Of a stretch of 64,000 nt of DNA, positions 2,596-64,000 are shown piece after piece. The number at the start of each line of letters is the position of its first letter. Position 1 is the stretch's first letter. The stretch spans positions 725,214,001-725,278,000 of the forward strand of contig NW_027362761.1 of NCBI RefSeq assembly GCF_046119375.1, given 5' to 3'. The notes under the pieces are model-generated. The model was not told the origin of the DNA and made no database searches. It saw only the letters and a list, made by a program, of their open reading frames with translations. The stretch comes from Phyllobates terribilis (Eukaryota). The position numbers were made by a program, and so were the translations under genes.

Positions 2596-2597
2596 GT

Positions 2598-2607
2598 TTG
2601 CTCGGGC
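2598..2607 (+). promoter_or_regulatory. Self-priming primer-binding site
   Basis: TTGCTCGGGC lies just after the 5' LTR, lacks the TGG start of a tRNA PBS, and is the exact reverse complement of GCCCGAGCAA at 1975-1984, 30 nt after the TATA box. Confidence 0.8.
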
Positions 2608-2608
2608 C

Positions 2609-6500: not shown

Positions 6501-6811
6501 AAATTAAAACTCCCAGCCACCTTACGAATTCCCAACTCCTTCCACGTATCTCTCCTCAAACCAGTTGTCTTTAATTCTTTTTCCAACAATCCAGGTTCTT
6601 CCCCTGCTCCGGTTTCCGCTGAGGACGTTTTTGAGGTAGAGAATATTCTGGCCACCAAAAGGGTAAGAGGAAAAACCTTTTTTCTGGTGGATTGGAAGGG
6701 GTTTGGCCCAGAGGAGAGAACTTGGGAACCCAGGGAGAACATCCATGCTCCGCTTCTCCTTGAAAAATTTCTTTCTGGCCTAAAAAAGAGGGGGCGTAAA
6801 GGGGGGGGTAC
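3547..6811 (+). pseudogene. pol: pol (protease, RT, RNase H, integrase, GPY/F, chromodomain), disrupted
   Basis: LDSGA; YLDD; EVDAS/IYTDHKNL RNase H; HHCC and SDRG..SNGQVE integrase; chromodomain VFEVENIL..FLVDWKGFGPEERTWEP. Stops at 3631, 3902 and 6162; frameshifts near 3830 and 5820. Confidence 0.95.
6782..6810 (+). promoter_or_regulatory. Polypurine tract
   Basis: AAAAAAGAGGGGGCGTAAAGGGGGGGGTA immediately before the TGTAGC start of the 3' LTR. Confidence 0.8.
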
Positions 6812-7548
6812 TGTAGCATTGGCGTCTCTGCCTCCTGCCAGGCAGAGACGCCGTCCCTCTCACCTCCCCGCTCTCCGCGCGGCATCCTCCTGCGCTACTC
6901 TTCCTGCTGCTGCCATCCTAAGGAGTCCCCGGCCAATAGCCGGAGGACCACCCATATATAAGGCACCTCCTCCAAAATGGAGGTGCCCGAGCAATAGTTG
7001 TTGCACAGCATACTTATCTCTGCTTCAGCCCTCAGGTCCAGTTGCCAGCCTGACTACTGTTCCAGTCCGCCAGTCTGACTACTCTCCAGCCCGACAGTCT
7101 GTCTTCCGTTCAACCCGCCAGTCTGTCTATGGGCAAGTCCGTCTGCTTACCAGGAAGCACTCGCCTGTTACCTGCCTGTTACCTGATAGCCTACCTGGAG
7201 GCTCCTGCTGTCACTTGCCGTGACTACCTGTCTGCTAAACCTAGAGACTTCAGCCTGCTCTGCCGTCACGTGCCTTGACCACCTGTCAACTAACCCAGAG
7301 ACTTCTGCCTGCTTGTTGTGTCCATCCGCTATACCGGTCAGTCCCAGTCTGCTGACCCATGGGAGCCACCTGCTCTCTTACAAGGTCGTCCCCAGAGTAG
7401 CACCTGGTCCCACTGCTCGGTCCCTCCATGGTCACGGAGTCGTTAGCCGCCGTACGACCAGGGTCGGTCTGAGTTGATGCTTAGCAACGCCCCTCTGGGG
7501 CCCTTCTTGCACCGCGGCACAGAGGTTCCATCACCCGGATCCATAACA
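6812..7548 (+). repeat. 3' LTR of the sushi-type element
   Basis: TG...CA ends (TGTAGC...ATAACA); highly similar to the 5' LTR except in U3 and for a 57-bp indel. Confidence 0.93.
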
Positions 7549-7859
7549 ATTGTGCTGCTTCATTGCTATGCAATAAGGTTTTCCCCTCATTAGAAGTTTG
7601 TCCTTCCTCTCTCTCTGTCTCTCTCTCTTTGATGTAACTCTGATGTCAGTAACCCCTCCCTTCTGCATTCTTCTTCCTCATTCACTGAACCCCTATGACG
7701 GAAACTAAAGGTACAAGTGCTTCTCACTAAATTAGAATATCATCAAAAAGTAAATTTATTTCAGTTCTTCAATACAAAAAGTGAAACTCATACATTATTA
7801 GTCATTACAAACAGAGTGATTTATTTCTGTTAATGTTGATGATTATGGCTTACAGCCAG

Positions 7860-10497: not shown

Positions 10498-10987
10498 CAC
10501 ACACACAGTCACACATGCAGTCAGACACCAGCAGCCACACACACACAAAATCATTCACATGCAGTCACACACGCAGTCATGTATATATGTGCAGACTTGC
10601 ACATATACGGGTCGCAGAAATATGCGCACACACACACACAAATACAGACTTATACAAAGACACATACAGGCCTAAACATATTTGAAGACATGCAGAAAAA
10701 TACATATATACAGACATATCACACATACATAGATAAACACAATCATACATGCACACAGACACACAGGGGGTAAGTTGGGAACCAGCTTGTCTCCCGTCCA
10801 GCTCCTCTCCGGTGGTAAGCAATGGGCGCACACTGCGTGATATCACTTCAGCAGACACGGTCGCGCACAGGGCCATGTCTGTTATCTGTGCACAGCTGCT
10901 GGGGGAGCGGCCCGGGGCCCTCCCCGACCCAGTCCACCCCTGCTTGTCGAGATATGTGCGCCGCATCGGCGGCACGGCGCACAAAAC

Positions 10988-12585: not shown

Positions 12586-14091
12586 TATACTTAACAAAAA
12601 AGTGTGAAACAACTGAAAATATGTCTTATATTCTTGGTTCTTCAAAGTAGCCACCTTTTGCTTTGATGACTGCTTTGCACACTCTTGGCATTCTCTTGAT
12701 GAGCTTCAAGAGGTAGTCACCGGAAATGATTTTCACTTCACAGGTGTGCCCTGTCAGGTTTAATAAGTGGGATTTTGTGCCTTATAAATGGGGTTGGGAC
12801 CATCAGTCGTGTTGTGCAGAAGTCAGGTGGATACACAGCTGATAGTCCTACTGAATAGACTGTTAGAATTTGTATTATGGCAAGAAAAAAGCAGCTAAGT
12901 AAAGAAAAACGAGTGGCTATCATTACTTTAAGAAATGAAGGTCAGTCAGTCCAAAAATTGGGAAAACTTTGAAAGTGTCCCCAACTGCAGTTGCAAAAAC
13001 CATCAAGCGCTACAAAGAAACTGGCTCTCATAAGGACCGCCCCAGGAAAGGAAGACCAAGAGTCACCTCTGCTTCTGAGGATAAGTTTATCCGAGTCACC
13101 AGCCTCAGAAATCGCAGGTTAACAGCAGCTCAGATTAGAGACCAGGTCAATGCCACACAGAGTTCTAGCAGCAGACACATCTCTAGAACAACTGTTAAGA
13201 GGAGACTTTGTGCAGCAGGTCTTCATGGTAAAATAGCTGCTGGGAAACCACTGCTAAGGACAGGCAACAAGCAGAAGAGACTTGTTTGGGCTAAAGAACA
13301 CAAGGAATGGACATTAGACCAGTGGAAATCTATGCTTTGGTCTGATGAGTCCAAATTTGAGATCTTTGGTTCCAACCACCGTGTCTTTGTGCGATGCAGA
13401 AAAGGTGAACGGATGGACTCTACATGCCTGGTTCCCACTGTGAAGCATGGAGGAGGAGGTGTGATGATGTGGGGGTGCTTTTCTGGTGACACTGTTGGGG
13501 ATTTATTCAAAATTGAAGGCATACTGAACCAGCATGGCTACCACAGCATCTTGCAGCGGCATGCTATTCCATCCGGTTTGCGTTTAGTTGGACCATCATT
13601 TATTTTTCAACAGGACAATGACCCCAAACACACCTCCAGGCTGTGTAAGGGCTATTTGACCAAGACGGAGAGTGATGGGGTGCTACGCCAGATGACCTGG
13701 CCTCCACAGTCACCAGACCTGAACCCAATCAAGATGGTTTGGGGTGAGCTGGACCGCAGAGTGAAGGCAAAAAGGCCAACAAGTGCTAAGCATCTCTGGG
13801 AACTCCTTCAAGATTGTTGGAAGACCATTTCCGGGGACTACCTCTTGAAGCTCATCAAGAGAATGCCAAGAGTGTGCAAAGCAGTCATCAAAGCAAAAGG
13901 TGGCTACTTTGAAGAACATACAATATAAGACATATATTCAGCTGTTTCTCACTTTTATGATAAGTATATAATTCCACATGTGTTAATTCATAGTTTTGAT
14001 GCCTTCAGTGTGAATGTACAATTTTCATAGTCATGAAAATACAGAAAAATCTTTAAATGAGAAGGTGTGTCCAAACTTTTGGTCTGTACTG
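12586..14091 (+). mobile_element. Tc1-family transposon, DD38E (Intruder-type), left TIR truncated, inactive
   Basis: Homologous to 31782-33411. Intact right end ...GGTCTGTACTG|TA. Left end starts mid-TIR next to a TG/TA microsatellite. Confidence 0.93.
12877..13928 (+). pseudogene. DD38E transposase pseudogene
   Basis: ATG at 12877, 1-bp deletion near 12950 relative to the second copy, catalytic Glu changed to Lys (SPDLNPIK). Confidence 0.9.
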
Positions 14092-14095
14092 TATA

Positions 14096-17000
14096 TCCTA
14101 CTAATATTATAAATGCGAAAGTTTGTGAGTATGTATGTTTGTTACTCTTTCACGAAAAATCTACCGGACGGATTTGCATGAAACTTTACAGTAATATAGA
14201 TTATACATCGGAATAACATATAGGCTACAATTTGTAATGATTTTATGTAATTTTGGTCGTAATATAACGATACATGTCAATTAAGTCGGAAAAAAATCTG
14301 GCCTCTGAGAGCTATCTTGGCGTACGCTGCCTAAACCGTTTGAGTTACACAAAGATGATGTACCGTAGAATTGTTTGTGTTGAATAGTTCTAAATAAAAG
14401 TCCGCGACAGCATATATCTACCTTTTATGTGGAAGCCACTATGACCAAAATTGTGAACCATAAATTTAATTAAATTAGATACTATTTTACAATTTTACAA
14501 TGCACATTTTAGTATATTTATCAAACTTTTTAGTATATTTATCAAACTCTTATATACACACATACACAGGTGATATTTAAATGGCTGATTTACAGCAGTC
14601 AGAAGAGATTGATAATACAATAATTTGCCCATAGTGGATCATTGTATAGTGAGGTCACAGTTGCTGCCTGTCCACAGTCAGAATACAGGGGTGATCATAT
14701 ACCGTTGCCAGGTACAAGTGTGGCACAGGGGGTTCACACACGACCCCCAGGGACTGACATTTCCTAGAAACTTTGGCAGCTGTCAGTCATGAGCTCACCC
14801 TGATACATTACACTCTGGAAACAGCTGAAGGGAGAAGGATAATTTATGACATTTTCTCAGACTTAAAAAAAAAAAAAAAAAAAACACAGAAAACAGCCCA
14901 TATGTCAGGAACAGGTTACTAGGGAACTACACGTCCCAGCACGGCCTGCCCGCGCCCACAGCCCGGGGGGAGTGTGAGGCTTCCTCCTGCAGTTTGCCCG
15001 GGGGCACCGGGCCGTCATTGTCCTCACACAGGGGGTCCCCGCCGCCATTGTCCCTCCACATAACACCGTATAATAAAACATGCGCTCACCTGCGCCAGCT
15101 GCTGCAGCCGGGAAAGTTCCGAGCGCCTCACCTGGGCGGAGGGGAAGTGACTCACACACGGGGAGGGGCAGTAACCTGAGCGCAGCTCCATGGAGGATGC
15201 ACACACTGCAGCCTGACAGCACCGGCAGCAGCGCTACACAAATGGCGTCCTCCCCTCCTGTGTGCAGCACAGCCCTGTGTGTGTGCAGCGCAGCATGTCA
15301 CCCACAGCACCAGCAGGCTGCTCTCAGCTCCCACAGAGCACTGGGAATGGTTACTATGGGTAACCGCGCCACAGCGGCTCCTCATAGACCAGTCATATAA
15401 AACTGATATCGTCTGTACAGCGATCGTAATATAACTAATTAGATTGTTTTATTATTTTGTTTGAACTTTACTAAGTACCTATTTTGTAATTAGTACTTAT
15501 AAAAATGCCGCGAAAGCGTAAGTCTAACATTTCCCAAAGCTCTAACAAAGCCCGAGCTATGAAAATAATTAGACGTGATGAGACGTCTCAACAAGCCGAG
15601 CAACGAAGGCTTGAGCAGGCGGTGCGTTGTGCGGCACATAGAGCTGCAGAGACTCCAAAACAATCCCAAGTCCGACGTGAACGGAATGCGAAGATTTTGG
15701 CATCTCAACGGGCTGCTGAAACTCAAGAACAGTCCCAAGCCCGACGTGAACAGCATGCGGAGTATCTGGCGTCTCAACCGGCTGCTGAAACTCCAGAACA
15801 GTCCCAAGCCCGACGTGAACAGCATGCGGAGTATCTGGCGTCTCAACGGGCTGCTGAAACTCCAGAACAGTCCCAAGCTCGACGTCAGCAGCAAGCGACT
15901 TACATGGCGTCCCAAAGAGCCACTGAAACTTATGGCCGAATCTCGCAGACGCACTGTTGCTGAAAGGGCAGCACAGCGACGTCAAACATTTACAAGAAAT
16001 ACATGGATATTGTTTAATAAAGCTGCATTTGAGTATGACGAGACTCTTGATTATGAAACTCACAAGCTTATAAAAATAGAAGCAATGACCATAGATTGCA
16101 AATATTGCAGAGCTCTTAAGTGGAAAGAGGAAGCAGCAGGTATGTGTTGTTTGGGCGGGAAAGTAGCTCTTCCTTATATAGACGAGCCAGTTCAACCTTT
16201 AAAAGAGCTTTTCTCTAATGAAACTGATGAATCTCGCCTTTTTCTAAATAATATAAGAAAATACAACATGTGCTTTCCTATGACGTCTTTTGGAGCAGAT
16301 CAAATTGTCTCAATGCCAGGGTTTTGCCCGACTTTTACAATACAAGGACAAGTATACCACCGTATCGGCTCTTTAATTCCTACGTCCATTTCGCAACCAC
16401 AATTTTTACAAGTTTATTTCATAGGTGACGAAGAAGAACAAATCAACAGGCGTACTGAGTGAAGTGCAAAGCGTATATAGAAACATAGTTAAAAAATTAC
16501 AATGAGTACTTCACGACCACAACATTTAATTTGATGCTTAAGTGTAGGCTCCTACTTCATCAGTTTCTGGTCGACATGTATGTAAAGATGGAAAGTGAGC
16601 GCTTAAGGTTCATTTCTTTAAATAAAAAAAAACTGCGCGCAGAAAATTATATTCACTTGCAAGATGCAATAAGAAATGATGCGGATTTGGATCCAAATAA
16701 CTTAGGTCAGATGGTGATTCTCCCGTCATCATTTGTAAATAGCCCGAGATACCTACACGAATAGACACAAGATGCGTTCACATACGTACGTAATTATGGG
16801 AGGCCTGATTTATTTATTACAATGACTTGCAACCCCGCTTGGCCAGAAATCACCAAAGAGCTTATGGCTGGTCAAAATTCAACGGACAGACATGACTTAA
16901 CAGCCCGAGTATTTAGAATAAAAGTACAGAAGTTGGTAGCTCTACTTACAAAAGGTAACATATTTAGTGATATGCAATGCTTCATGTACTCGATCGAGTG

Positions 17001-20000
17001 GCAAAAGCGAGGTTTGCCTCATGTTCACTTACTGCTGTGGTTAAAGGAAAAATTGCATCCGAACCAAATTGACGAAATCATATGTGCTGAGATACCAAAC
17101 CCAGAAACCGATCAAAAGCTCTATGATACAGTGACAAAGAATATGATTCACGGGCCATGTGGTACATTCAATTCTTCATCGCCATGCATGAAGGAAGGAA
17201 AATGTACCAAAAATATCCGAGGAAGCTTTTAAAAGATACTCAAACCAATGACAAAGGTTATCCTTTGTACAGGCGCAGAGCACCAGAGAATGGTGGACGC
17301 ACGACGATTATAAAAACCCGTAGAGGAACACAGGAAATATTGGTGGACAATAGCTGGGTGGTCCCATATTCTCCACTCTTATCAAAAATTTTTAATTCTC
17401 ATTTAAATGTAGAGTTCTGTAATACGGTACAGGCGATAAAATTTATTTGTAAATATATTAATAAGGGTAGCGACCAGGCTATTTTTAACATCCGCCAGTA
17501 AGGGAATGTTAACATTGACCCAAGAGATGAGGTGCAGACCTTTAGAACCGGCCGATATGTTAGTAGTAGCGAAGCAGCGTGGCGGATCTTAGGTCTGCCT
17601 CTGCACGAGAGACACCCAACCGTCACTCATCTCGCGATTCATTTACCCAATGGCGAGAGGGTTTACTTTACGGAAAATAATTTTAGAGACAGATTAGAAG
17701 CACCACCTAAAACTACACTAACTGCATTTTTCCTGTTGTGCCAAAGTGATACGTTTGCAAAAACATTACTTTACATTGATGTGCCTCGCTACTATACTTG
17801 GAATATGGCACGGAAGCAATGGAAACGTCGTTTACAAGGAACACCTGTCGATGGCTGGCCAGGTGTGAAGGCAGGAGACGCTCTAGGTCGCATTTACACG
17901 GTGCACGTTAGCAATTTTGAATGTTATTGCTTGCGTGTGCTGCTGAATGTAATAAGGGGTCCAACCAACTTCTCGGATTTAAAAACATTTGAAGGTCAAG
18001 AACTTGCAACTTTTCGGCAGGTGTGTGAGAAGATGGGGTTGTTGGAAGATGATAACCACTGGGATACCACCTTAGAAGAGGCCGTGCTATGTCACTCCCC
18101 GGCGCAAATAAGAGAGCTGTTTGCCATATTGATATGCACTTGCCATTTATCCAATCCTCTACAACTCTGGCACAAGTATAAAACTGCGTTATCAGAGGAT
18201 ATCATGCACAGATTTGAAAGAATGGATCACGTTAACGATGATCTCTGTTTCAATGAGGCGTTGGGGCTTATCGAGGACAAAATATTAATAATTTATGGAA
18301 AGAAATTGTCCGATTTTGGTCTACCCTCACCGCGGCGTAGAGGAGAGCTGTCGAACGAGTTGATAAAAGAGCTAAGCTATGATACCAACCAGTTAGACGC
18401 TCACGTTTGCGAAACTGAGCCACGTTTGCTACCTGATCAAAGAGAGATTTATCACAAAATAGTAGGACGAGTTGAGAATGGTGAAGGCGGACTTTTTTTC
18501 CTTGATGCCCCGGGTGGTACAGGAAAAACTTTCTTGCTTAATTTACTTTTAGCAAAAATTCGTAGCGGTCATAACGTTGCATTAGCTGTGGCTTCCTCTG
18601 GAATTGCTGCAACATTGCTAAGCGGTGGACGGACGGCACATTCAGTCTTTAAATTACCTCTTAATCTGGTGAACGAAGAAACCCCATCGTGTAATATCAG
18701 CAAGAGCAGCGCCCGTGGCCTCCTGTTGCAACAGTGCAAACTAATCGTGTGGGACGAGTGCACAATGTCACACAAACGCGCCATCGAAGCTCTTGATTGT
18801 TGTCTACAAGACTTACACAGTAAACAAACAATAATGGGTGGTGTGGTTGTTTCATTGGCTGGGGACTTTAGGCAAACTTTGCCTGTCATCGAGCGAGGCA
18901 CTGCAGCAGACGAAATTAACGCATGTCTGAAATCCTCATATTTATGGACCAAAGTTGAAAAGCTGCACCTCACCACCAACATGCGTGTCCAGTTATTCAG
19001 TGATCTAGAGTCGGGCGCGTTTGCTGAGAAACTGCTCGAGATCGGTGAAGGTCGAATCGAAACTGACGAAGAAGGTATGGTTCTATTCACTAACCAATTT
19101 TGTCATGTTGTGGATTCGGAAGACGCACTTATTGCTCAAGTTTTTCCAAATTTGCAACAAAACATCCACAATGAAAATTGGTTATGTGAAAGAACTATAC
19201 TAGCACCAAGAAATGAAACAGTTGCGAAAATCAATAAAATTATCTTGGACCAAGTAATCAGCGATGCAACAACCTACAACTCCATCAACACAGTCATGTC
19301 ATCTGAAGACTGTACGAGCTACCCCGTGGAGTTTCTTAACTCTTTGGAGCTATCCGGGGTCCCATCTCATAAGCTCGAATTAAAGGTCGGTATACCCGTT
19401 TTGTTAATGCGCAACTTGGACGCCCCGAGATTATGTAATGGCACTAGATTGAGAGTCACTGAACTAGGCAGGCACATTGTAAAGGCCACAATTTTAACTG
19501 GAGAAGCTAAGGGTGAAAATATTCTTATACCACGCATCCCAATAATACCCAATAACTTACCCTTTAATTTCAAACGTTTGCAGTTCCCACTTAAAGTTGC
19601 ATTTTCAATGACCATCAATAAATCGCAAGGGCAAACTTTGAAGGTAGCGGGGATACATTTAGGCGCGCCCTGGTTTTCCCACGGTCAGCTATACGTAGCT
19701 TGCTCACGTGTTTCTAAATCGCAAAATCTACATATTTTCGCTGAACGAAAGAAATCAAATAACATAGTTTACAGGAGTATATTGCAGTAAAAACACATAG
19801 ATAAATTACCTGCAGATGTCCATTATTCCAATTACATACTAATTCTTTACTAACACGAACAATATAAAACGCAAGTAACTTCAGTCCGTCCTGTTTATTA
19901 ATCAGTGTTTAGTAATCCGTTTGTGATGAAATTTGATATGGATCATTTCAAGCCTGGGGAAGGACATAGGGCTACTTTTTATAAACACACCATACAGGCG

Positions 20001-20390
20001 AAGATTATATAAAACTGTAAACCTGATTGACTGACACACCTAGCGGTCAACGCACAGCCGAAACCACTGAACTTAGCATCTTGAAATTTGCAGATAGGTT
20101 CTATTATAGCTTAAATGAGCACTAAGAAAGGAATTTTGATAATTCCACCCTCAAGAGTTTCCCTCTTAATATTATAGGGGTTCAAAGATTGTATGGAATC
20201 CGTCAGTTTTGAAGTTAGACATCTGAAATTTTGGATGTACGAGTAACTAAATAAGATTTTTTTTTTTTTACTATTAAGATTATTTTTTTTTGCTATTACG
20301 ATTATTTTATTTTACTATTAAAATGATCTGTCACGAAACTTAATGTGACAGACCAAATTCCACGCGAGCGAAGCCGCGGGTAAAAGCTAG
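14096..20390 (+). mobile_element. Helitron, decayed autonomous (RepHel)
   Basis: A|TCCTACTAATATTATAAATGCG 5' end; hairpin CGCGAGCGAAGCCGCG followed by CTAG|T at 20387-20391; Rep and PIF1 coding remnants. Confidence 0.93.
15505..19790 (+). pseudogene. Helitron Rep-helicase (HUH endonuclease plus PIF1 helicase), frameshifted; helicase part still open (17532-19790)
   Basis: Rep motifs TCNPAW, EWQKRGLPHVH, FICKYINKG; helicase motifs DAPGGTGKT, WDECTM, GDFRQTLP, LTTNMR, TINKSQGQT, HGQLYVACSR; N-terminal 23-aa (69-bp) repeats. Confidence 0.95.
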
Positions 20391-20392
20391 TA

Positions 20393-21008
20393 TCTACATA
20401 AATAAAAATGTAAGTGTGGTGCAGAAGTCTCATTGACAGTTACAGGAATCGTTTGATTGCAGTGATTGCCTCAAAAGGTTGTTCAACAAAATATTAAGTT
20501 AAGAGTACCATCATTTCTGTCCAGGCCTATTTCATGAGTTTAATTTTATTTTTTTTAATTCTGTGGAAGCAGGGTTGAAAAGCAATGTCTGACTTTCATT
20601 TGTTCATTTCCATAGATTTTTAATTTCTTATTACTTTTGTCAGATTCAAGTTATTTCTGAGACCATTGTGGGTTTTTCTTTCATTAAATGAGGGGTACCA
20701 ACAATTTTGACCACGTGTGTATATATTACAATTCCCAATTCGATTGACGTTTGCAATCCCCATCAACAAAGCTCAGGGCCAATCTTTAGAATTGTGCTGT
20801 TTAAATCTAGACACGGATTGCTTCTCACATGGACAATCATATTTTGCATGCTCTAGAGTCGGCAAACCAGACAATCTCTATATCAACACTGACAATGGAA
20901 CAACAAAAAATATTGTAGAAAAAGATTTTAGAAACGTGAGCTTTCTCTTTTCTTTCTTTTCCATTTAACCAGACTGAGCCACAGCAACGCGTGACCGGGT
21001 ACAGCTAG
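20393..21008 (+). mobile_element. Short non-autonomous Helitron carrying a Tc1 3' fragment and a PIF1 C-terminal fragment
   Basis: A|TC start; GCCACAGCAACGCGTGAC hairpin and CTAG|T end; Tc1 C-terminus LIAVIASKGCSTKY* plus TIR (about 20417-20719); INKAQGQ..FSHGQ..CSRVG (20717-20968). Confidence 0.75.
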
Positions 21009-21785
21009 TATATTAATAAATGTTTTTAACTTACATATTTGAAAGGGCGCCTTCCAATACATGGCCAAGGTATATGCCTATATTAGCTGTATAGTCTACC
21101 CTCAACTACTATTTAAAAAAATATATATTCTTCATTTTTTTCTGCATATAGTTGTATTATAAAACATAGTTAAGAATGTCGATAAATAGACATTTTTCTA
21201 ATTATCTATAAAAAAAAGATTGTGAAAACACACAACCTCACATTGTGTGAAGAAAGCCAAACAATTAGTATGATCTTAATGTCTTATTACATTTTGAAGA
21301 AAAAGACACATTTTAAATCACAAAGATCTCTAGCCATATGGGGGTTAAATCAGAACAAAGTGGACACTTGAGTTAGATGAGCAAGACAAGGAATCCATTA
21401 GTTTCATCGTCTCATGAAATAACACAAAACAGGTAAGCTTGAAGATCAATTCATTTTAACAGCTATGCATTGGCTAAATTGATTTGCATTTTTATGCAGA
21501 AAAGAGACAATCAATAAGAAATGCAGATTTAATACCATGTTTCTATATTTCTACAACTAACGTTGATTTGTCTGATTTAATAGTTAATTCAAGGAATAAA
21601 GGAGTTTAATTTCCAGAACTACATTTTTGTTATATTCAGAAAATCCCATTTTCCAAACAAAAGTTGTTTAATAAAAAAATGTTCCACAATATTTCATATT
21701 ATAAAGCCCTTTCTTTCAAGATCTGAACACATCTTTCTATCTCTCATTTTCAAAAATGTTTTAGGTTGGCTTACTGATATGATGA

Positions 21786-31781: not shown

Positions 31782-33411
31782 CAGTACAGACCAAAAGTTT
31801 GGACACACCTTCTCATTTAAAGATTTTTCTGTAATTTCATGACAATGAAAATTGTACATTCACACTGAAGGCATCAAAACTATGAATTAACACATGTGGA
31901 ATTATATACTTAACAAAAAAGTGTGAAACAACTGAAAATATGTCTTATATTCTAGGTTCTTCAAAGTAGCCACCTTTTGCTTTGATGACTGCTTTGCACA
32001 CTCTTGGCATTCTCTTGATGAGCTTCAAGAGGTAGTCACCAGAAATGGTCTTCCAACAATCTTGAAGGAGTTCCCAGAGATGCTTAGCACTTGTTGGCCC
32101 TTTTGCCTTCACTCTGCGGTCCAGCTCACCCCAAACCATCTCAATTGGGTTCGGGTCTGGTGACTGTGGAGGCCAGGTCATCTGGCGTAGCACCCCATCA
32201 CTCTCCTTCTTGGTCAAATAGCCCTTACACAGCCTGGAGGTGTGTTTCGGGTCATTGTCCTGTTGAAAAATAAATGAAGGTCCAACTAAACGCAAACTGG
32301 ATGGAATAGCATGCCGCTGCAAGATGCTGTGGTAGCCATGCTGGTTCAGTATGCCTTCAATTTTGAATACATCCCCAACAATGTAACCAGCAAAGCACCC
32401 CCACACCATCACACCACCTCCTCCATGCTTCACGGTGGGAACCAGGCATGTAGAGTCCATCCGTTCACCTTTTCTGCGTCGCACAAAGACACGGTGGTTG
32501 GAACCAAAGATCTCAAATTTGGACTCATCAGACCAAAGCACAGATTTCCACTGGTCTAATGTCCATTCCTTGTGTTCTTTAGCCCAAACAAGTCTCTTCT
32601 GCTTGTTGCCTGTCCTTAGCAGTGGTTTCCTAGCAGCTTTTTTACCATGAAGGCCTGCTGCACAAAGTCTCCTCTTAACAGTTGTTGAAGAGATGTGTCT
32701 GCTGCTAGAACTCTGTGTGGCATTGACCTGGTCTCTAATCTGAGCTGCTGTTAACCTGCGATTTCTGAGGCTGGTGACTCGGATAAACTTATACTCAGAA
32801 GCAGAGGTGACTCTTGGTCTTCCTTTCCTGGGGAAGTCCTCATGTGAGCCAGTTTCTTTGTAGCGCTTGATGGTTTTTGCAACTGCACTTGGGGACACTT
32901 TCAAAGTTTTCCCAATTTTTCGCACTGACTGACCTTCATTTCTTAAAGTAATGATGGCTACTCGTTTTTCTTTACTTAGCTGCTTTTTTCTTGCCATAAT
33001 ACAAATTCTAACAGTCTATTCAGTAGGATTATCAGCTGTGTATCCACCAGACTTCTGCAAAACACAACTGATGGTCCCAACCCCATTTATAAGACAAGAA
33101 ATCCCATTTATTAAACCTGACAGGGCACACCTGTGAAGTGAAAACCATTTCCGGTGACTACCTCTTGAAGCTCATCAAGAGAATGCCAAGAGTGTGCAAA
33201 GCAGTCATCAAAGCAAAACATGGCTACTTTGAAGAACCTAGAATATAAGACATATTTTCAGTTGTTTCACACTTTTTTGTTAAGTATATAATTCCACATG
33301 TGTTAATTCATAGTTTTGATGCCTTCAGTGTGAATGTACAATTTTCATTGTCATGAAAATACAGAAAAATCATTAAATGAGAAGGTGTGTCCAAACTTTT
33401 GGTCTGTACTG
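31782..33411 (-). mobile_element. Full-length Tc1-family DD38E (Intruder-type) transposon
   Basis: TA|CAGTACAGACCAAAAG...CTTTTGGTCTGTACTG|TA; TIRs of about 268 bp (31782-32049, 33144-33411). Confidence 0.95.
31945..32997 (-). CDS. DD38E Tc1 transposase, 350 aa, open
   Basis: Paired-like HTH, GRPR, WSDE, QQDND followed by 38 residues to the Glu of NPIE; no stop or frameshift. Confidence 0.92.
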   Translation of the reverse strand: MARKKQLSKEKRVAIITLRNEGQSVRKIGKTLKVSPSAVAKTIKRYKETGSHEDFPRKGRPRVTSASEYKFIRVTSLRNRRLTAAQIRDQVNATQSSSSRHISSTTVKRRLCAAGLHGKKAARKPLLRTGNKQKRLVWAKEHKEWTLDQWKSVLWSDESKFEIFGSNHRVFVRRRKGERMDSTCLVPTVKHGGGGVMVWGCFAGYIVGDVFKIEGILNQHGYHSILQRHAIPSSLRLVGPSFIFQQDNDPKHTSRLCKGYLTKKESDGVLRQMTWPPQSPDPNPIEMVWGELDRRVKAKGPTSAKHLWELLQDCWKTISGDYLLKLIKRMPRVCKAVIKAKGGYFEEPRI

Positions 33412-39065: not shown

Positions 39066-40691
39066 CAGTAGCATGTAAAAGTTTGGGCACCCCTGGTCAA
39101 AGTTAGTGTTATTGTGAACAGTTAAGCAAGTTGAAGATGAAATGATCTCTAAATGGCCTGAAGTTAAAGATAACAGATTTCCTTTGTATTTTAGGCAAAA
39201 AATATATATTTTTTAATCTTTTACATTTTAAAAATGACGAAAAAGGAAAATGGACCAATGCAAAAGTTTGGGCATCCTGCATGGTTAGTGCCTAGTAGCA
39301 CCCTCTTTTGAAAGTATCGCAGCTTGTAAAAGCTTTTTGTAGCAAGACAAGAGTCTTTCAATTCTTGTTTGAGGGATTTTCATCCATTCTTCCTTGGAAA
39401 ATCCTTCCAGTTCTGTGAGATTCCTGGGTCGTCTTGCATGCACTGCTATTTTGAGGTCTAGCCACAGATTTTCATTGATGTTCAGAAGAGGGGACTGTGA
39501 GGGCCATTGTAAAACCTTCAGATTGCACCTTTTGAGGTAGCCTATTGTGGATTTTGATGTTTGTTTAGGATCATTAACCATTTGTAGAAGCCATCCTCTT
39601 TTCAACTTCAGCTTTTTTACAGATGGTGTTATGTTTGCATCAAGAATTTGTTGAAATTTCATTGAATCCATTGTTCCCTCTACCTGTGAAATGTCCCCTG
39701 TACCATCGGCTGCAACACAACCCCAAAGCATGACTGATCCACCCCCATGCTTAATAGTTGGCGAGATGTTATTTTCCTGAAATTTGGTGGCCTTTTTTCT
39801 CCACACATACCTTTGATCATTGTGGCCAAAGACTTCTATTTTAACCTTTTCGGTCGACAGAACTTGTTTCCAAAATGTATCAGGCTTGTTTAGATGTTCT
39901 TTTGCATACTTCTGATGCTGAATTTTATGGTGAGGCTGCAGGAGAGGTTTTCTTCTGATGACTCTTCCATGAAGGTCATATTTGTGCAGGTGTCTCTGAA
40001 CAGTAGAACAATGAACCACAAAGCTAGAGTCTGCTAAATCTTTCTGTAGGTCTTTTGAGGTCAAGCGGGGGTTCTGATTTGCCTCTCTAGCAATCGTACA
40101 AAGAGCTCTCACTGAAATTTTTCTTGGTCTTCCGGACCTTATCTTGACCTTCACTGTTCCTGTTAACTGACATTTCTTAATTACATTTCAAATTGAGGAA
40201 AGGGCAACTTGAAAACACTTTGCTATCTTCTTATAGCCTTCTCCTGCTTTATGGGCCTCCACCATTTTCATTTTCCGAGTGCTAGGCAGCTGCTTAGAAG
40301 AACCCATGGCTGCTGTTTTTTTGGCATAAAGTTAGAGGAGGCTTGGTTTTTACAAAGCTGGGAAATTTTCATCACCTGGCATTTCCTAACGATGGTAGTG
40401 AACAAGCCATAACCCTAACAGGCTAATTAAGGTCTGAAACCTTGGTCAAAATTATCAAAGCACACAAATCTTCAAGGGTGCCCAAACTTTTGCATAGGCC
40501 CATTTCCCTTATTGTAATTTTTTAAAATGAAAAAAAAAATATATATATATATATTTATTTGCCTAAAATACAACTGAAATATGTCATCTTTAACAATATG
40601 CCTTTTAGAGATCATTTCATTTTCAACTTGCTTAACTGTTCACATTAACAGTGATTTTGACCAGGGGTGCCCAAACTTTTACATGCCACTG
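39066..40691 (-). mobile_element. Tc1 transposon (DD34E-type), decayed
   Basis: TA|CAGTAGCATGTAAAAGTTTGGGCACCCCTGGTCAAA and its reverse complement at the right end plus TA; ORF 39285-40154 with KHGGGSVMLWGC and mutated catalytic motifs. Confidence 0.92.
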
Positions 40692-58172: not shown

Positions 58173-58304
58173 TGTCTGTAGACAAGATGTCTCCAGCGCC
58201 ACTTAATTTCCAATGTAGAGGTGACACAGAATAACCCTTTTAGTTGAATACATTTCCACATATTAAGGAGGACTTTTCACTTGCTAAAAAAATTGAATAA
58301 CATA

Positions 58305-58728
58305 CCTTGTAAAAATCCCTGAGCACCTGTGATTTTGCCACTCTTTTCCGTTCTGCGCTGCTTCATTCTGTTGCAAAAATATTTGTATTTGTTGCTTTTG
58401 GAGCACAATATGTAAAATCTCTACCAACTGGGTATTTCTTCAGAATATTCTCTTTCATGCCTCTTTCTTAAATGCTGCCATTTACAGCTTGGCAGCAGAT
58501 CTATCAGTCTAAGGTGCTGCTGAGCTGTGATGGGCAGCGTCTGGGAAGGAGGGCAAAAAACGCACATTTCCAGAAAAGACTTTGAAGAAACGCCTAGTTG
58601 AACTGCAACCAGAGATTTCACACATTGCGCTTCAAAAGCAACAAATGTGAATAGCTCCACAATGGAGCAACACAGCACAAAATGGAAATGAGTGCCAAAA
58701 TCAATGGAGCTCAGGGATTTTTACAAGG
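58305..58728. mobile_element. MITE with TA TSD
   Basis: Perfect 20-bp TIR CCTTGTAAAAATCCCTGAGC, imperfect inverted arms extending about 110 bp, TA on both sides. Confidence 0.8.
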
Positions 58729-59724
58729 TATCTAACTCAATTTTTTGAGTAAATGAAAGGTCCTATTTAACTAAATGTCTTCTTACCATATTTTGTATTT
58801 TAATTATTCCTTTAGTTTTATTTTTTTAGGTTGTACATATTTTTATTCACTGGTTTGCTTATATGCTGAATACATTTAACAACATTTGTAATATAATGAA
58901 ATATGCAGCTTTGTTATAAATGTGATTTAAATGTTAATTTTAAATCATACAAAATATGTATTGTACATTTTTTTCATGTAATGACAAGTCTCAGGGTACT
59001 CTCATCAGGACATAAGAGTAACATTATGGATGGCCAAAAAACAGAGAAGGTTTGTAGTCAAGTATCTGAAGCTCAGGACGCATATTGATTCAGGGAAAAA
59101 TCCTATACTGTTCTCCCAGCGCACAATCCATTTGTGTTTGTCTGAACAACACTAATTAAGTCTGTTGGATAAGAAGGAACTTTAAAATCAGACCCAAATA
59201 TTTAACCATTTGTGCTTATGTCTTATGTCTTTATTCAGTAGCCCACACTACTGTTTTCTACAATGTACTCTGCGAGACACGTTAATGTAAAAAAGGGACA
59301 TTCCAGTTATTTAGTCTAATGTAAGAAGAGAATGTTTGTGTTTGTGTCAAATTATGTGTTATTGAATATGTTTTTTAAGCATTTAAACATACATTTATTT
59401 CCTTTATTTTTCCACCGATATCGCCCAATTTCAGAAAAAAAAAGAGAAAATATAACAGTGACATAAAAATGAAGCCACATGTTTCGCGAAAAAAAGATGC
59501 AAAAATTATTTAGACATCCAAACAAGAATGTTACAGCTCTTTAAACCACATGTATGAAAAAAACTAAAATATGTCTGGTCAGGAGCGGGGGCTTGATTAC
59601 CTCACACTTAAAGTGGCACTTACTTCACTTGCAGTTTTGTACTCCTAGGTAGGCCCCTCCAGATGTGGTAATATCTCTCCTTTACTCTCAGGCTGTTACT
59701 TTCCATAATTCTTCCACTTGCAGG

Positions 59725-60945
59725 TGACGCGCCCCCTGGGCCATGTTCAAGGGATACCCGGAGCCGGATCTGGATGGGGGTAGTAGTCCTTGTGGCGGTG
59801 ACCCGGTCCGTGCCCAGGGTGTCAAACTAAGTGTGTGGCAGTCTTGGTAGATGTTGTTTCTGTGTCGACTACGCCACCCGTTGATTTGCGGTCACAAGGC
59901 CGCCGATGCAGAACAGTCCGCTGAGGCCGGTAGTGTGTGTGCAGCAATGGTGGTATAACCCCCAACGGGAGGGGTATGGCCTCAGGGCAGCTGGTGCGGA
60001 TGATGGGGGTAGTGATAGTGCAGAAAGGAGAGTCAGAGACGTGAGATGCAGTTTCAGGGTTTTTACTCACAGGTGTTCCTTCAGTCACTCTGGCCTTGAG
60101 TGACCACCCGAGCCGTGCTGCATCCACCAGGTGCGGGACTCGGCTAACCCCCAGGCAGTTCCGGAGCGTGGTCCTGAGCTTCCCTCTCACTCTCTTTCTC
60201 CTGGCCGTCCCCACCAGGGATCCACCTTTGTCCGGTTCCCTTGGGCCTTCTATGGTAAAACCTTCTCTGGCTTTCCTGACCCTACTCTTGGTGTACCTTC
60301 CTGGTGGATGTGGTGAGGGTTGTGGCAAAACTTGACCACGACCTCCGGTTCCTGGTTAAGGGTTACTTTTGCCTCCGCCAGCTTGGGATCCGGTGCCCTC
60401 TTCTGCCAACCCTTCACCCTTTTTAGCTCACTCGTGGGATCTCAGGGTTCCCTCTTGGTCTTATGCCTCTGGGCCTTTCTTCTTCCTCTCTGCCTCAGGC
60501 CTGGCCCTGGAGCTGGGCCCAGCCGGAGCCACAGCTCCTTGTCAGCCCTCCTGGCTGAACTCTCCTTCAGCTTCCCCTCAGGCTGAACTCGACCGACCGA
60601 CCCTGTCCTAAGATGGTGCCCACCTTATATACTCCCTCTATGTGTGAGCCCAGGTGACCAGCACCCAATGGGCTCCTAGCTTTACCCAGAGTACTCCCCC
60701 TATCTGCCCCTACACTACTGGGATGTTCCACCCCCCCTCCCACTCCAGCCAGGGACAGACGCTGTCGTACCTGCACATCTACTTGGTGGGAGTACCGTAG
60801 TTCTGGCCCCCGGAAATGGGATGTATGTAGTGCATGCAGCCTACTAAGCTCAGTCCCACACTCCATCCTTACCCGGGAGTGGAATACCACACCTCTGGTT
60901 TGAGGTGCAATACCCCTGTAGCAGCCGAGACCTCAGGGTGCTACA
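59725..60945 (-). repeat. 3' LTR (1221 bp)
   Basis: Minus strand reads TGTAGCACC...GCGCGTCA; TATATAA near 60630; 59725-60329 matches 63396-64000. Confidence 0.93.
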
Positions 60946-60955
60946 TTCCCCCCTG
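60946..60955 (-). promoter_or_regulatory. Polypurine tract
   Basis: Minus strand CAGGGGGGAA abuts the TGT start of the 3' LTR. Confidence 0.8.
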
Positions 60956-61465
60956 GTAAATCACAGCACGTCCTCGGGCTGTAAAAGAATAAAAACATAC
61001 CAAAACATACAAACTTTTTAAAACATACACCAACATATAAAACATTTTCCTTTGCCATAATAAAACATCTGACAAATGCCACCGGAACTCTTTTGGCACA
61101 TTAGACATATTATTACTCTAGCAGCATAAAATTTTCAATATAACTTTTCCATATAAAACTCTTTTATATAAAATGTTCTTGAATTTCTGGCCACTGTGCA
61201 CTTGTGACCAGGTAAAGTGCAACAGTACAAAAACAGTTCCTTATAAAACCGGTAGGGGGCGCCTTAAGAAGCGCAACTATTTACAGGGCGGCCGCTCTCA
61301 GTCCTCGGCCAGTGGGGATAAGGAATGGCTGTTCACAGTCCTCAGCCTGTTAAGGGATAGGGACACACGGGTAACAGTTTGCTGGTCCCAACGGGGACTA
61401 TACTTTACTGGTAACAGTTCTTGTACCCTTACGGGTAACTATTTACAGCTTCACTGTACCGTACT

Positions 61466-63496
61466 TTAATAACGGCATCCTCCTGCTCCTTCTTGAGGGT
61501 AACCTTCAAACCCGTCCGGGTCCTCTTGTCCTTCCTCAAACCGCAGCTCTTCCTCAGTCAATCTGTGCACATGGAGAGCATATGGACCTTTGGCACATTG
61601 ATGCCGGGTGAAGGTGACCTCATCACCCAGGTAAAGATCACGTCCTCTGTGTCCCTCCGGCAGATGGCTCTCGACGTCCCTGCGGGTGACAAAGACGTCG
61701 CCGGGGGTTCTGTGGTCCCGGATAAAACCCCAACCGTGCTGCAGTTGAAACTTGATTACGGTCCCGGTGGCGCGGGGACCATGGGCTGCACGGGGGTTTC
61801 GTCTGGTCCGGCTTTTCTGTTCCGCACTCTGTACTTGCAGCCGCTCCTCGCGGACCCGCCTCTCTCGCCGTTCCCGGTCGAAGACCTCCAGCTGTTGCCG
61901 GCAGCACTCTGCTCGCTGGGCTGCGGCCGCCCGAGTCTCGTGGGTGAACCCAATGAGGTTTTCTCCAGTGGGGTCCCATTCGAATTGGGCCTCCTCCAAC
62001 GGGAGCGGGGTGATCTTGGCGGGCGCCGGAGCCGGAATCAGGGGCTCACACAGAGGCCTTTCCTTCCGGAGTCGGGGATGGAGGTACTCCGGTGGCCACT
62101 CAAAGGGCTGCCCATCCGGGCAAGTGTGCTGGGCGAACAGGTCTTCACCCAAGGGTAGCACGGTGGAGGTTGAGGGCGCGATGGTAGTAGCGGCGCCCGG
62201 ATTCACCAGGCCTTGCGACCAGGCCGGTGGCGCTCTAAAGGTAAAGGGCACTGTGGAGACGGCGGCGCCCGGGGGCACTCGGCCCTGCGACCAGGCCAGT
62301 GACTTGGTGGAGATAGAGGGCTCTGTTGGAACTGCGGCGCCCGGGGGTACTCGGCCCTGCGACCAGGCCGGAGGCGTCTCCTGCTTGGCCGCGCTCGGGG
62401 TTGAGGCGCGTGACGTCACAGGGGGCGTGGCCGCGGCTCCTGCTTGAGGCCTAGTCTGGAGCGGTGGCGGTGCAGCGACGGGCACGGTAGGGGGAATTTC
62501 GGGCTCTGCGACGGGGAGCTGGGGCAGGCTCACGGTTTCTAGGCTTGGGGTAGTGACGTCCCCTTTACCTGACTCCATCTCTTCAGCTCCTTCCACGGCG
62601 TCGTCTCCGGCCTTCATTCCTCCTGCACCATCCTCAGAGGCGGTCAGACTCCTCGTCTCGGGTGGCGTGCTCCGCTGGCGGGTTCCAGCCTGCTGGGCCA
62701 TCTCCCTACTCCACTCAGTCAGCGTTTCTTGCTGCACCTGGGCCATCCTCCGTGCGAGGCCCTCCAGCGCGGTCTGTGCACGCTCCCGGTCTCGGGGGAG
62801 CTGTGCCAGGATCTCCACCAGGTCTTGTGGGGTGGTGGCTTGCAACAGGCTCCTGACCACAGGGTCGGTGCTGCCTGACTCTCCCTCCATCTCCGGGTGC
62901 GACCTCTCCAGACTCTTCCAGGCTGCACCCATCCTCACTCTTTTGTTCTTGATCCGCCCATACTGAGGGCGGTCCTGGGGCAACTTGGTGATTGTCAGTT
63001 CCAGGGGAAGACCCCCCACGCTGACGGACATCTCAATCATTGCAGTCTCTGCTGGTGGGGGCGGTTTCCGCTTTTGGCGCCATTCCTGGACCTGGCCCAC
63101 GATGGGAGGTGGCCTCTTGCCACCCTCTGGCACGCCCATAATGGCGTCCGCTCTGCCAGGGCGGGAAATCATCTCAGATGGCGGGAATCGTCTCCTAATG
63201 GCGGGAAACTCCGTGGATGGCGGGAAAAGGCTGCAGATGGCGGGCAAACGGCGGGAAACGACCCGAGATGGCGTCCGATGGCGGGGACCCTCCGGAACCG
63301 GCGGGAGACTTCTTCTTACGGTAAATATGAACTTTTCTTCAGGCACGCAGTACCCGGTGGTTGCGGGCACGTTATCCTGCCGACTACGCCAAAATTGACG
63401 CGCCCCCTGGGCCATGTTCAAGGGATACCCGGAGCCGGATCTGGATGGGGGTAGTAGTCCTTGTGGCGGTGACCCGGTCCGTGCCCAGGGTGTCAA
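61466..63496 (-). CDS. Retroelement ORF (up to 676 aa): helical N-terminal region, Pro/Ala-rich linker with 3 x 24-aa repeats, C-terminal cold-shock domain (61562-61771)
   Basis: Uninterrupted frame of 2031 nt; TGTVIKFQLQHGWGFI..GDVFVT..LYLGDEVTFT...AKGPYALHV aligns with CSD RNP1/RNP2. The true start is probably a Met downstream of the PBS. Confidence 0.82.
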   Translation of the reverse strand: MTPWARTGSPPQGLLPPSRSGSGYPLNMAQGARQFWRSRQDNVPATTGYCVPEEKFIFTVRRSLPPVPEGPRHRTPSRVVSRRLPAICSLFPPSTEFPAIRRRFPPSEMISRPGRADAIMGVPEGGKRPPPIVGQVQEWRQKRKPPPPAETAMIEMSVSVGGLPLELTITKLPQDRPQYGRIKNKRVRMGAAWKSLERSHPEMEGESGSTDPVVRSLLQATTPQDLVEILAQLPRDRERAQTALEGLARRMAQVQQETLTEWSREMAQQAGTRQRSTPPETRSLTASEDGAGGMKAGDDAVEGAEEMESGKGDVTTPSLETVSLPQLPVAEPEIPPTVPVAAPPPLQTRPQAGAAATPPVTSRASTPSAAKQETPPAWSQGRVPPGAAVPTEPSISTKSLAWSQGRVPPGAAVSTVPFTFRAPPAWSQGLVNPGAATTIAPSTSTVLPLGEDLFAQHTCPDGQPFEWPPEYLHPRLRKERPLCEPLIPAPAPAKITPLPLEEAQFEWDPTGENLIGFTHETRAAAAQRAECCRQQLEVFDRERRERRVREERLQVQSAEQKSRTRRNPRAAHGPRATGTVIKFQLQHGWGFIRDHRTPGDVFVTRRDVESHLPEGHRGRDLYLGDEVTFTRHQCAKGPYALHVHRLTEEELRFEEGQEDPDGFEGYPQEGAGGCRY
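63374..63391 (-). promoter_or_regulatory. Primer-binding site, tRNA-Ser
   Basis: TGGCGTAGTCGGCAGGAT is an 18/18 complement of the vertebrate tRNA-Ser 3' end (ATCCTGCCGACTACGCCA), 4 nt from the LTR end. Confidence 0.93.
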
Positions 63497-64000
63497 ACTA
63501 AGTGTGTGGCAGTCTTGGTAGATGTTGTTTCTGTGTCGACTACGCCACCCGTTGATTTGCGGTCACAAGGCCGCCGCTGCAGAACAGTCCGCTGAGGCCG
63601 GTAGTGTGTGTGCAGCAATGGTGGTATAACCCCCAACGGGAGGGGTATGGCCTCAGGGCAGCTGGTGCGGATGATGGGGGTAGTGATAGTGCAGAAAGGA
63701 GAGTCAGAGACGTGAGATGCAGTTTCAGGGTTTTTACTCACAGGTGTTCCTTCAGTCACTCTGGCCTTGAGTGACCACCCGAGCCGTGCTGCATCCACCA
63801 GGTGCGGGACTCGGCTAACCCCCAGGCAGTTCCGGAGCGTGGTCCTGAGCTTCCCTCTCACTCTCTTTCTCCTGGCCGTCCCCACCAGGGATCCACCTTT
63901 GTCCGGTTCCCTTGGGCCTTCTATGGTAAAACCTTCTCTGGCTTTCCTGACCCTACTCTTGGTGTACCTTCCTGGTGGATGTGGTGAGGGTCGTGGCAAA
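63396..64000 (-). repeat. 5' LTR (partial, cut by the window edge)
   Basis: Matches 59725-60329 except at 63577 and 63992. Confidence 0.93.

Follow-up and report, generated by a model that had tools for sequence, protein, structure and literature searches.

The end of a 64,000-nucleotide stretch of DNA from the poison frog Phyllobates terribilis (RefSeq assembly GCF_046119375.1, contig NW_027362761.1, positions 725,214,001 to 725,278,000 of the forward strand; hereafter the window) holds a long terminal repeat (LTR) retrotransposon, which lies on the minus strand at 59725-64000 and whose 5' LTR runs off the window at base 64000. Its only long open reading frame (ORF) ends in a cold-shock domain (CSD). 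The best explanation of this copy is that it is a recent insertion of a dendrobatoid (poison and rocket) frog family of non-autonomous LTR retrotransposons, a reading to which we assign a probability of about 0.5 when the function proposed below is included. The window sequence was free of N, and neither BLASTN nor TBLASTN found a further copy of any part of the element within the 64 kb.

The two LTRs were recognized as direct repeats at 59725-60329 and 63396-64000. These were identical at 603 of 605 positions, with mismatches at 59906 (A/C) and 60321 (T/C), the latter at a CpG. The 3' LTR spans 59725-60945 on the minus strand (1221 bp, beginning TGTAGCACC and ending GCGTCA), while of the 5' LTR only the last 605 nt are present (63396-64000, minus strand, also ending GCGTCA), with the remainder beyond the window end. 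The CA ends lie at 59725-59726 and 63396-63397. Because the 5' LTR is cut, the inner boundary of the 3' LTR could be inferred only from the polypurine tract (PPT; AGGGGGGAA, 60946-60954, minus strand), which directly adjoins the LTR start. This places the TG at 60944-60945 and gives the inferred lengths of 1221 bp for the LTR and 2450 bp for the interior, and the boundary is backed by an alignment in which the LTR start is homologous to those of three related elements described below (L001-L003). If substitution rates of 0.8-2 x 10^-9 per site per year are assumed, the two substitutions (K = 2/605) would make the insertion ~0.8-2 million years old. A pattern scan of the 3' LTR gave a TATA-like box (plus-strand coordinates 60626-60631) and an AGTAAA (60062-60067).

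Four nucleotides past the LTR lies the primer binding site (PBS), TGGCGTAGTCGGCAGGAT, at plus-strand coordinates 63374-63391 (minus strand). The first 18 nt of a human tRNA-Ser antisense template (PMC3299991) are identical to it, and it is therefore complementary at 18 of 18 positions to the tRNA 3' end, CCA included. This string is unique in the window, where 0.01 chance matches would be expected even with three mismatches allowed. No Rfam family matched within 59000-64000, and no tRNA genes were found in the window or in L001-L003. At the other end of the interior, the PPT is preceded by a conserved block (60955-60995, minus strand) that could be aligned between the window and L001-L003 and consists of a pyrimidine tract with CAG, followed by CCCGAGGACGTGCTG. 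This tract resembles a 3' splice site located 30-35 nt before the PPT (window 60955-60995; L002 12285-12320; L003 11915-11945), and GT-containing, splice-donor-like sequences were seen by eye downstream of the PBS.

The ORF runs from ATG 63139 to 61466 on the minus strand (557 aa, stop codon included in the coordinates) and is the only long one in the interior: over 61466-63139 its frame has a single stop, its own, against 8-21 in each of the five other frames. It sits at the gag position, directly after the leader, and is followed by an AT-rich 3' untranslated region (60996-61465, minus strand; 41% G+C over 60946-61465), whose ORFs were without a Pfam match. A Pfam search with all element ORFs of at least 50 aa returned the CSD as the sole family, with no gag capsid, protease, reverse transcriptase (RT), RNase H, or integrase, and a CCHC knuckle (C-x2-C-x3-5-H-x3-5-C) was absent from all six frames. 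The ORF alone takes up 1674 of the 2450 bases of the interior, which leaves too little room for pol. The idea that the ORF product is a Gag lacking only its knuckle was rejected, as no capsid-like part was detected by profile search or in the predicted fold: Pfam gave no Gag family, there was no Gag among the phmmer matches, and the top 50 of the 66 Foldseek matches in the PDB were all CSDs.

An earlier note on this DNA had described near-identical LTRs (2 substitutions in 605 bp), TG..CA ends, an 18/18 tRNA-Ser PBS, an intact PPT, and a 2.45-kb interior without protease, RT, RNase H, integrase, or CCHC knuckle. This description agrees with the direct repeats, with the PPT-then-TG boundary, with the human tRNA-Ser antisense template (PMC3299991), with the tract at 60946-60954 that adjoins the TG, and with the outcome of the Pfam search and the six-frame pattern scan.

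Between the PBS and ATG 63139, some ten C(C)CGCC(AT) units are arrayed in the leader at a spacing of 10 or 20 nt (63146-63303, minus strand). Exact matches to CCCGCCAT occur five times in the 64-kb window, all of them within 108 nt (63178-63285), and the CpG observed/expected ratio over 63140-63395 is 1.17. The leaders of L002, L003, and L004 each have one to three copies of CCGCCA(T/A). As a unit does not comprise a whole number of codons, this is a repeat at the nucleic-acid level, and the leader RNA was no more structured than shuffled versions of it (z +0.9). The CCGCCA(T/A) core is just as similar to the Kozak consensus and, read on the other strand, to a YY1 site, and the array was therefore not counted as evidence for the target of the CSD; a cluster of YY1-like sites, an amplified Kozak region, and an RNA-level signal are all candidate roles for it.

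The start codon could be placed at ATG 63139, 63172, or 63415, the first two being downstream of the PBS. ATG 63139 has a good context (GCCATTATGG) and gives the 557 aa. The main frame, though, is open upstream through the array and the PBS to ATG 63415 in U5, which also has a good context (AACATGG; open region 63139-63496), so that 557 aa is the minimum product. In L002 the ORF opens at an ATG 31 nt past the PBS, and L003 has the homologous ATG, whereas the window has TAC at this place. At ATG 63139 the sequence MGVPEGG fits a myristoylation pattern by eye and might thus be a membrane-targeting signal of the matrix (MA) type, with the start codon itself uncertain.

Cold-shock domain and architecture of the ORF product

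The CSD is encoded at 61565-61768 (minus strand) and was identified by Pfam (PF00313), by an AlphaFold2 (AF2) model, and by Foldseek. PF00313, which has a curated cut-off of 27 bits, scored 31.4 bits on the whole 676-aa ORF and 35.4 bits on its C-terminal piece, covering aa 577-644. Among the related proteins P0001, P0004, and P0006 also passed the cut-off, with P0002 and P0003 just under it. The AF2 model, built from a seven-sequence family alignment, has a five-stranded barrel at aa 456-526 (pLDDT 87-91). Foldseek against the PDB returned 66 matches at E <= 0.001, of which the top 50 were all CSDs. CspA (1mjc) superposed with a TM score of 0.88 and an rmsd of 1.7 A, target-normalised TM scores to CspA, CspC, and CspE were 0.85-0.88, and CRHSP-24, YB-1, Unr, and Lin28B were also among the matches. 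Against predicted viral structures (BFVD), only CSDs of phages and giant viruses were found, and no retroviral protein. The claim of the earlier note that the ORF ends in a CSD was thus confirmed by both the Pfam search and structure prediction, in which an OB-fold is predicted that superposes on CspA, YB-1, and CRHSP-24.

For a profile of nine family CSDs the best match was YB-1/YBX2 (39 bits, E 6e-9). The alignment of this profile with YB-1 crosses the long beta3-beta4 loop with no more than one gap, of one residue, whereas the best bacterial Csp, in a single-sequence comparison, needs a gap of five residues there. This assigns the domain to the eukaryotic Y-box type, though at only ~30% identity. 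The loop itself, RRDVE.HL..GHPGRDL, is the most conserved family-specific stretch. Of the motifs, RNP1 is kept as GWGFI and RNP2 reads VFVT, its His being replaced by Thr, Asn, or Ala, and the equivalent of Y72 of YB-1 is a Trp in the family.

Directly before the CSD, the model has a long helix (aa 400-447; 61799-61942, minus strand; pLDDT 81-96) with a basic second half; there are 16 K+R in aa 399-458, and the order of helix then CSD is also seen in the family alignment. An N-terminal helical region (aa 93-152; 62684-62863, minus strand; pLDDT 71-86) shares 44% identity with aa 2-86 of P0038, a Phyllobates gene model. Between these, aa 154-339 are predicted by AF2 to be disordered and are rich in proline and alanine. 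Three 72-nt tandem repeats (62162-62376, minus strand) encode 24-aa units of the type PPAWSQG..PGAA, all three of which are present in P0001 too, and these units may represent a short linear motif. For the N-terminal half as a whole, no informative relative was obtained by phmmer against the PDB, by a word-seeded search with aa 1-170, by Pfam, or by Foldseek against the PDB and BFVD, and its assignment as Gag, MA, or capsid (CA) would be unjustified on the outcome of those searches.

Relatives in poison and rocket frogs and selection on the ORF

An exhaustive phmmer search over 1.84 billion representative proteins gave 35 matches, and the 6 that reached beyond the CSD all came from dendrobatoid frogs. 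Such relatives were found only in Phyllobates terribilis (P0001, 66% identity), Ranitomeya variabilis, R. imitator, and Anomaloglossus baeobatrachus. The other matches examined were multi-CSD proteins that aligned over the CSD only, the named ones being from dinoflagellates. A word-seeded search with the C-terminal part of the protein added two Phyllobates terribilis RefSeq gene models, in which part of the ORF is fused to a Harbinger transposase (P0038) or to R3HCC1 (P0039). Both are likely annotation chimeras, because dispersed repeat copies yield such models in automated annotation. Phyllobates by itself has three lineages whose CSDs share only 55-63% identity, which fits a repeat family that is old and has diversified.

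At the DNA level, we compared five copies, namely the window element and four loci from R. variabilis (L001, L003) and A. baeobatrachus (L002, L004). All four relatives have the same design, without pol and with a single ORF: their interiors measure 2.3-2.7 kb and carry an intronless CSD ORF, and no gag or pol domain was found inside the element in any of L001-L004. LTRs, measured in three of the four relatives, were ~1.0-1.3 kb, and a tRNA-Ser-like PBS and the same PPT block recur, with the G-run PPT at the matching place in L001-L003 (by alignment) and in L004. The spacing from LTR to LTR is 3522-3866 bp in the relatives and 3671 bp in the window, where 3866 bp is the value for L002 minus a 4880-bp insertion. 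Since four relatives share this architecture, the window copy is not a one-off deletion of a gag-pol element, and L001-L004, from two other dendrobatoid species, bear out the earlier proposal of a non-autonomous family.

In L004, LTRs of 1284 bp (99.5% identical) enclose a 2.3-kb interior with TGGCGTCACGAACAGGAT 4 bases past the 5' LTR, an intact intronless ORF of 481 aa, a G-run PPT, and a target-site duplication (TSD) of GGCCC. L002 has 1150-bp LTRs with two mismatches, the same PBS as L004, a PPT of AAGGGGGAA, a TSD of TAAA, and an interior of ~2.7 kb if an RT-bearing insertion of later date is left out of the count. In L003, the LTRs are 98.7% identical, the PBS is that of L004, and the ORF has decayed, with a stop that splits the N-terminal part from the rest and with key CSD residues lost; a Ty3/gypsy element is nested in its 3' LTR. 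L001 is a rearranged copy with LTR pieces of 94-96% identity and a degenerate PBS. The ORF is intact in the window, L001, L002, and L004. The LTRs of the window element, L002, and L004 are 99.5-99.8% identical, a range that becomes 98.7-99.8% when L003 is added. Recent insertions (window, L002, L003, L004) have therefore taken place in at least three genomes.

Other repeats occur at several of these loci. The insertion in L002 (5104-10246), of 4.6 kb and RT-bearing, entered the CSD ORF in frame and created an open frame of 1142 aa; it is accompanied by an exact 263-bp duplication (5104-5366 = 9984-10246) and looks Penelope-like, judging from a YIDD motif, a weak RVT_1 match, and a GIY-YIG-like tail seen by eye. 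The element nested in L003 (12973-18579) is a complete Ty3/gypsy on the minus strand, with gag, protease, RT, RNase H, and integrase and a duplication of GGGCC, and this locus also contains additional partial LTR copies of the CSD family (5748-7550). L004 is located inside a satellite-like repeat (7784-8450, 13320-13853, 16836-21446), with a large tandem array filling the end of the locus.

Comparison of the window with L002 and L004 showed where the DNA has been conserved. BLASTN gave 74-76% identity around the PPT and LTR start and 71% around the LTR end, PBS, and leader, and only these PBS-side and PPT-side flanks were alignable, the ORFs no longer being so as DNA. The two flanks are thus better conserved than the synonymous sites of the ORF, which would be expected if these signals must fit the machinery of a helper. 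Between the conserved flanks, the family has two PBS 18-mers, both of which start with TGGCGT and end with AGGAT (window 63374-63391; L004 9739-9756; L002 4735-4752; L003 9473-9490). Between the window and L004, the sequence on either side of the PBS is near-identical while the 18-mer itself is different (TGGCGTAGTCGGCAGGAT versus TGGCGTCACGAACAGGAT). During reverse transcription the PBS is recopied from the primer tRNA, by which a PBS can be replaced as a block. The swap seen here fits such recopying and provides indirect evidence that the elements may really be reverse-transcribed from tRNA-Ser primers. The second PBS type looks like a switch between tRNA-Ser isoacceptors or isodecoders; we take TGGCGTCACGAACAGGAT to correspond to a tRNA-Ser(CGA) isodecoder, although a literature string search with it gave no match.

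Constraint on the protein was assessed in the five elements for which DNA was at hand, their CSDs being aligned without gaps over 67 codons. The dN values were 0.33-0.72, and dS was saturated and not estimable in 9 of 10 pairs, for which reason identity per codon position was used. Between copies, this was 54-72% at position 1, 49-75% at position 2, and 27-39% at position 3, the last being about the value given by composition alone. As positions 1 and 2 have been kept while position 3 is saturated, the CSD behaves as a coding sequence constrained over a very deep divergence, a pattern that indicates long purifying selection across deeply diverged copies. Together with the saturated dS, these identities agree with the expectation of the earlier note that the CSD is kept by the element family instead of decaying neutrally. 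At the protein level, the CSD of the window element is 88% identical to that of P0001, against 53-67% for the other regions.

The window consists mostly of repeats. An older Ty3/gypsy chromovirus that is unrelated to the CSD element occupies 1902-7556 on the plus strand (LTRs ~87% identical) and has a gag with a weak, below-cutoff zinc-knuckle match, RT, RNase H, integrase, and a chromodomain. After it come large arrays of minisatellites whose periods are 31 and 35-36 nt (7827-10605), three Tc1/mariner transposase ORFs (12969-13928, 31945-32997, 39285-40154), and a Helitron-like ORF for a PIF1-type helicase (17532-19790). About 1 kb from the 3' end of the CSD element lies an inverted repeat of 160 nt (58263-58422 and 58611-58770) with 78% complementarity. 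We considered whether the chromovirus at 1902-7556 or the gypsy element of L003 could be the helper of the CSD family; both were rejected, as they share no LTR sequence with it and have no Ser PBS.

Proposed mobilisation and competing explanations

We propose that the family is a parasite mobilised in trans, whose helix-plus-CSD protein would coat or chaperone its own RNA, and we give this an even chance of being correct. In this model, the element would be transcribed from its 5' LTR, and the RNA would be reverse-transcribed from a tRNA-Ser primer and integrated by an RT and an integrase that come in trans from a pol-bearing LTR element or an endogenous retrovirus (ERV) able to recognise the same LTR ends and the same PBS and PPT flanks. 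The ORF product would bind single-stranded RNA of the element, with a preference in cis for the very molecule being translated, and the resulting ribonucleoprotein (RNP) would stabilise or chaperone this RNA and raise its chance of uptake into the particles of the helper. Its working principle would then be like that of LINE-1 ORF1p (a coiled coil with an RNA-binding module) or of the Y-box messenger RNP (mRNP) proteins, and unlike that of retroviral Gag. More tentatively, the replacement of Gag by a helix-plus-CSD protein might be seen as a convergent "ORF1p solution" in the world of LTR elements, one that parasitises the particles and enzymes of an unrelated helper and that has lasted until synonymous sites became saturated. 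The roles suggested in the earlier note, in which the protein would take the place of the nucleocapsid knuckle in tRNA annealing, strand transfer, or packaging, or would mask the RNA in oocytes, are conjectural.

A number of observations count against this proposal. No pol-bearing partner with shared cis signals was present in the window or the four loci, and the DNA-level comparison includes only five copies. The N-terminal half of the protein is both poorly conserved and poorly modelled. With regard to RNA binding, equivalents of the YB-1 stacking residues F74 and F85 are kept, while that of W65 is variable (K/A/D/S) and that of H87 is T, N, or A; with only two of the four stacking residues kept, binding of nucleic acid by the CSD is plausible but not assured. 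The leader array, too, was considered as a binding site for the CSD protein, as CAUC is a motif preferred by YB-1 (PMC3458536). CAUC is ~seven-fold enriched in the window leader, but this idea was dropped because the relatives do not keep the motif: the leaders of L002 and L004 have none, and that of L003 has a single copy.

It is also conceivable, although unlikely, that the family is a deletion lineage of a complex ERV, with the CSD ORF as an accessory or captured gene, originally of a replication-competent retrovirus, for a post-transcriptional regulator (of RNA export, translation, or stability) that has no part in packaging or chaperoning. The G-run PPT followed by AATG, the long LTRs, and the 4-5-bp TSDs would be compatible with a retroviral origin, and the PPT presumably resembles that of MLV. 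The conserved 3'-splice-site-like tract before the PPT and the donor-like sequences past the PBS (by eye) would also be in keeping with such an origin, and gag-pol-env ERVs of birds carry repeatedly acquired CSDs at various positions (PMC12287698). Yet all five elements studied at the DNA level are nearly equal in size and without gag and pol, their ORF occupies the gag position directly after the leader, and neither sequence searches nor the predicted fold matched a portion of the ORF to a retroviral protein. Less probable again is a host-directed protein, which would compete with or mimic Y-box proteins so that the element escapes translational masking or germ-cell small-RNA silencing. The closeness of the family profile to the YB-1/YBX2 CSDs, long beta3-beta4 loop included, would suit such a role, and the conservation of RRDVE.HL..GHPGRDL hints at a partner other than RNA; against it, identity to YB-1 is only ~30%, and the C-terminal basic/acidic islands of Y-box proteins are not evident.

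That the ORF is a passenger, i.e. a transduced host sequence without a role in spread as with the gene fragments in some plant LTR elements, seems very improbable to us. LTR elements and retroviruses do transduce host genes, and the N-terminal half evolves fast. The CSD protein has, however, been kept in copies from different genera in which synonymous sites are saturated, the ORF is intact in young copies and decayed in the oldest seen (L003), and the phmmer search of 1.84 billion proteins revealed no host orthologue outside the family. Hardly credible is a host or domesticated gene family that merely lies near repeats, even though RefSeq labels members as "uncharacterized protein LOC...": in the window, L002, L003, and L004 the ORF is framed by an LTR pair, a PBS, and a PPT, TSDs are present in L002 and L004, all five gene models checked are intronless, and two of the Phyllobates models are evident chimeras (with Harbinger transposase and R3HCC1). 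The anatomy of the element and the evidence at the family level are robust, and it is the mobilisation in trans with a self-encoded RNA-coating protein to which the even odds apply.

Known systems and significance

Capture of CSDs by LTR-bounded retroelements has been described before. Bird endogenous retroviruses of the ERV-A/B and ERV-G groups, with gag-pol(-env), acquired CSDs (pfam00313) several times and at varying positions, which was proposed to aid element proliferation (Mol Biol Evol 2025; PMC12287698). The likeness to the frog element, which is drawn here from the published description, is that of an LTR-bounded retroelement with a pfam00313 CSD; it differs in that the bird elements keep gag-pol(-env) and have the CSD as an extra, while in the frog element gag and pol are lacking and the CSD protein is the sole product. 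In our literature search, made outside Repbase and Dfam, no LTR element was described that lacks pol and has a CSD protein as its sole product. Of the novelty that the earlier note had suggested, this design appears to stand, whereas CSD capture by LTR elements as such was already published for the bird ERVs (PMC12287698).

With respect to mobilisation, the frog element is comparable to LTR elements that are without pol and depend on the proteins of a helper, while their LTRs, PBS, and PPT are intact. Among such elements, mobilised in trans, are LARD/TRIM elements, mouse ETn (by MusD), VL30 (by MLV), mammalian MaLR, and barley BARE2. Their interiors are either non-coding or encode Gag, in contrast to the CSD protein of the frog element, and we know of no such element that encodes a conserved RNA-binding protein other than Gag. 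Acutely transforming retroviruses and maize Bs1 are likewise LTR elements in which replication genes have given way to a non-retroviral ORF. Those, however, are recent captures of recognisable host genes, whereas the frog ORF has no detectable source and has long been selected within the family.

Parallels for the protein itself lie elsewhere. LINE-1 ORF1p binds its own transcript, and Y-box proteins package mRNA into mRNPs. With ORF1p the frog protein shares a long helix followed by an RNA-binding module, the position of the first ORF, and the proposed mechanism of a cis-acting RNP and chaperone; LINE-1, in turn, is a non-LTR, target-primed element whose ORF1p has an RRM and a C-terminal domain, where the frog protein has a CSD and oligomerisation is only conjectural. 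YB-1/YBX2 (Xenopus FRGY2) is the best CSD profile match and can be aligned through the long beta3-beta4 loop, but at ~30% identity, with the W65 and H87 equivalents not kept and with other flanking regions, it is not an orthologue.

For the annotation of poison-frog genomes, the family accounts for several "uncharacterized protein" and chimeric gene models. Non-autonomous LTR elements are usually seen as non-coding hitch-hikers or as parasites that encode only Gag. A family that is free of capsid and polymerase and keeps a different, putatively RNA-binding protein under selection asks what the minimal needs are of a parasite on retroviral machinery, and whether a general chaperone of the mRNP type can stand in for the functions of nucleocapsid. 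With its young copies, intact ORFs, and well-defined cis signals, the family makes this question directly testable.

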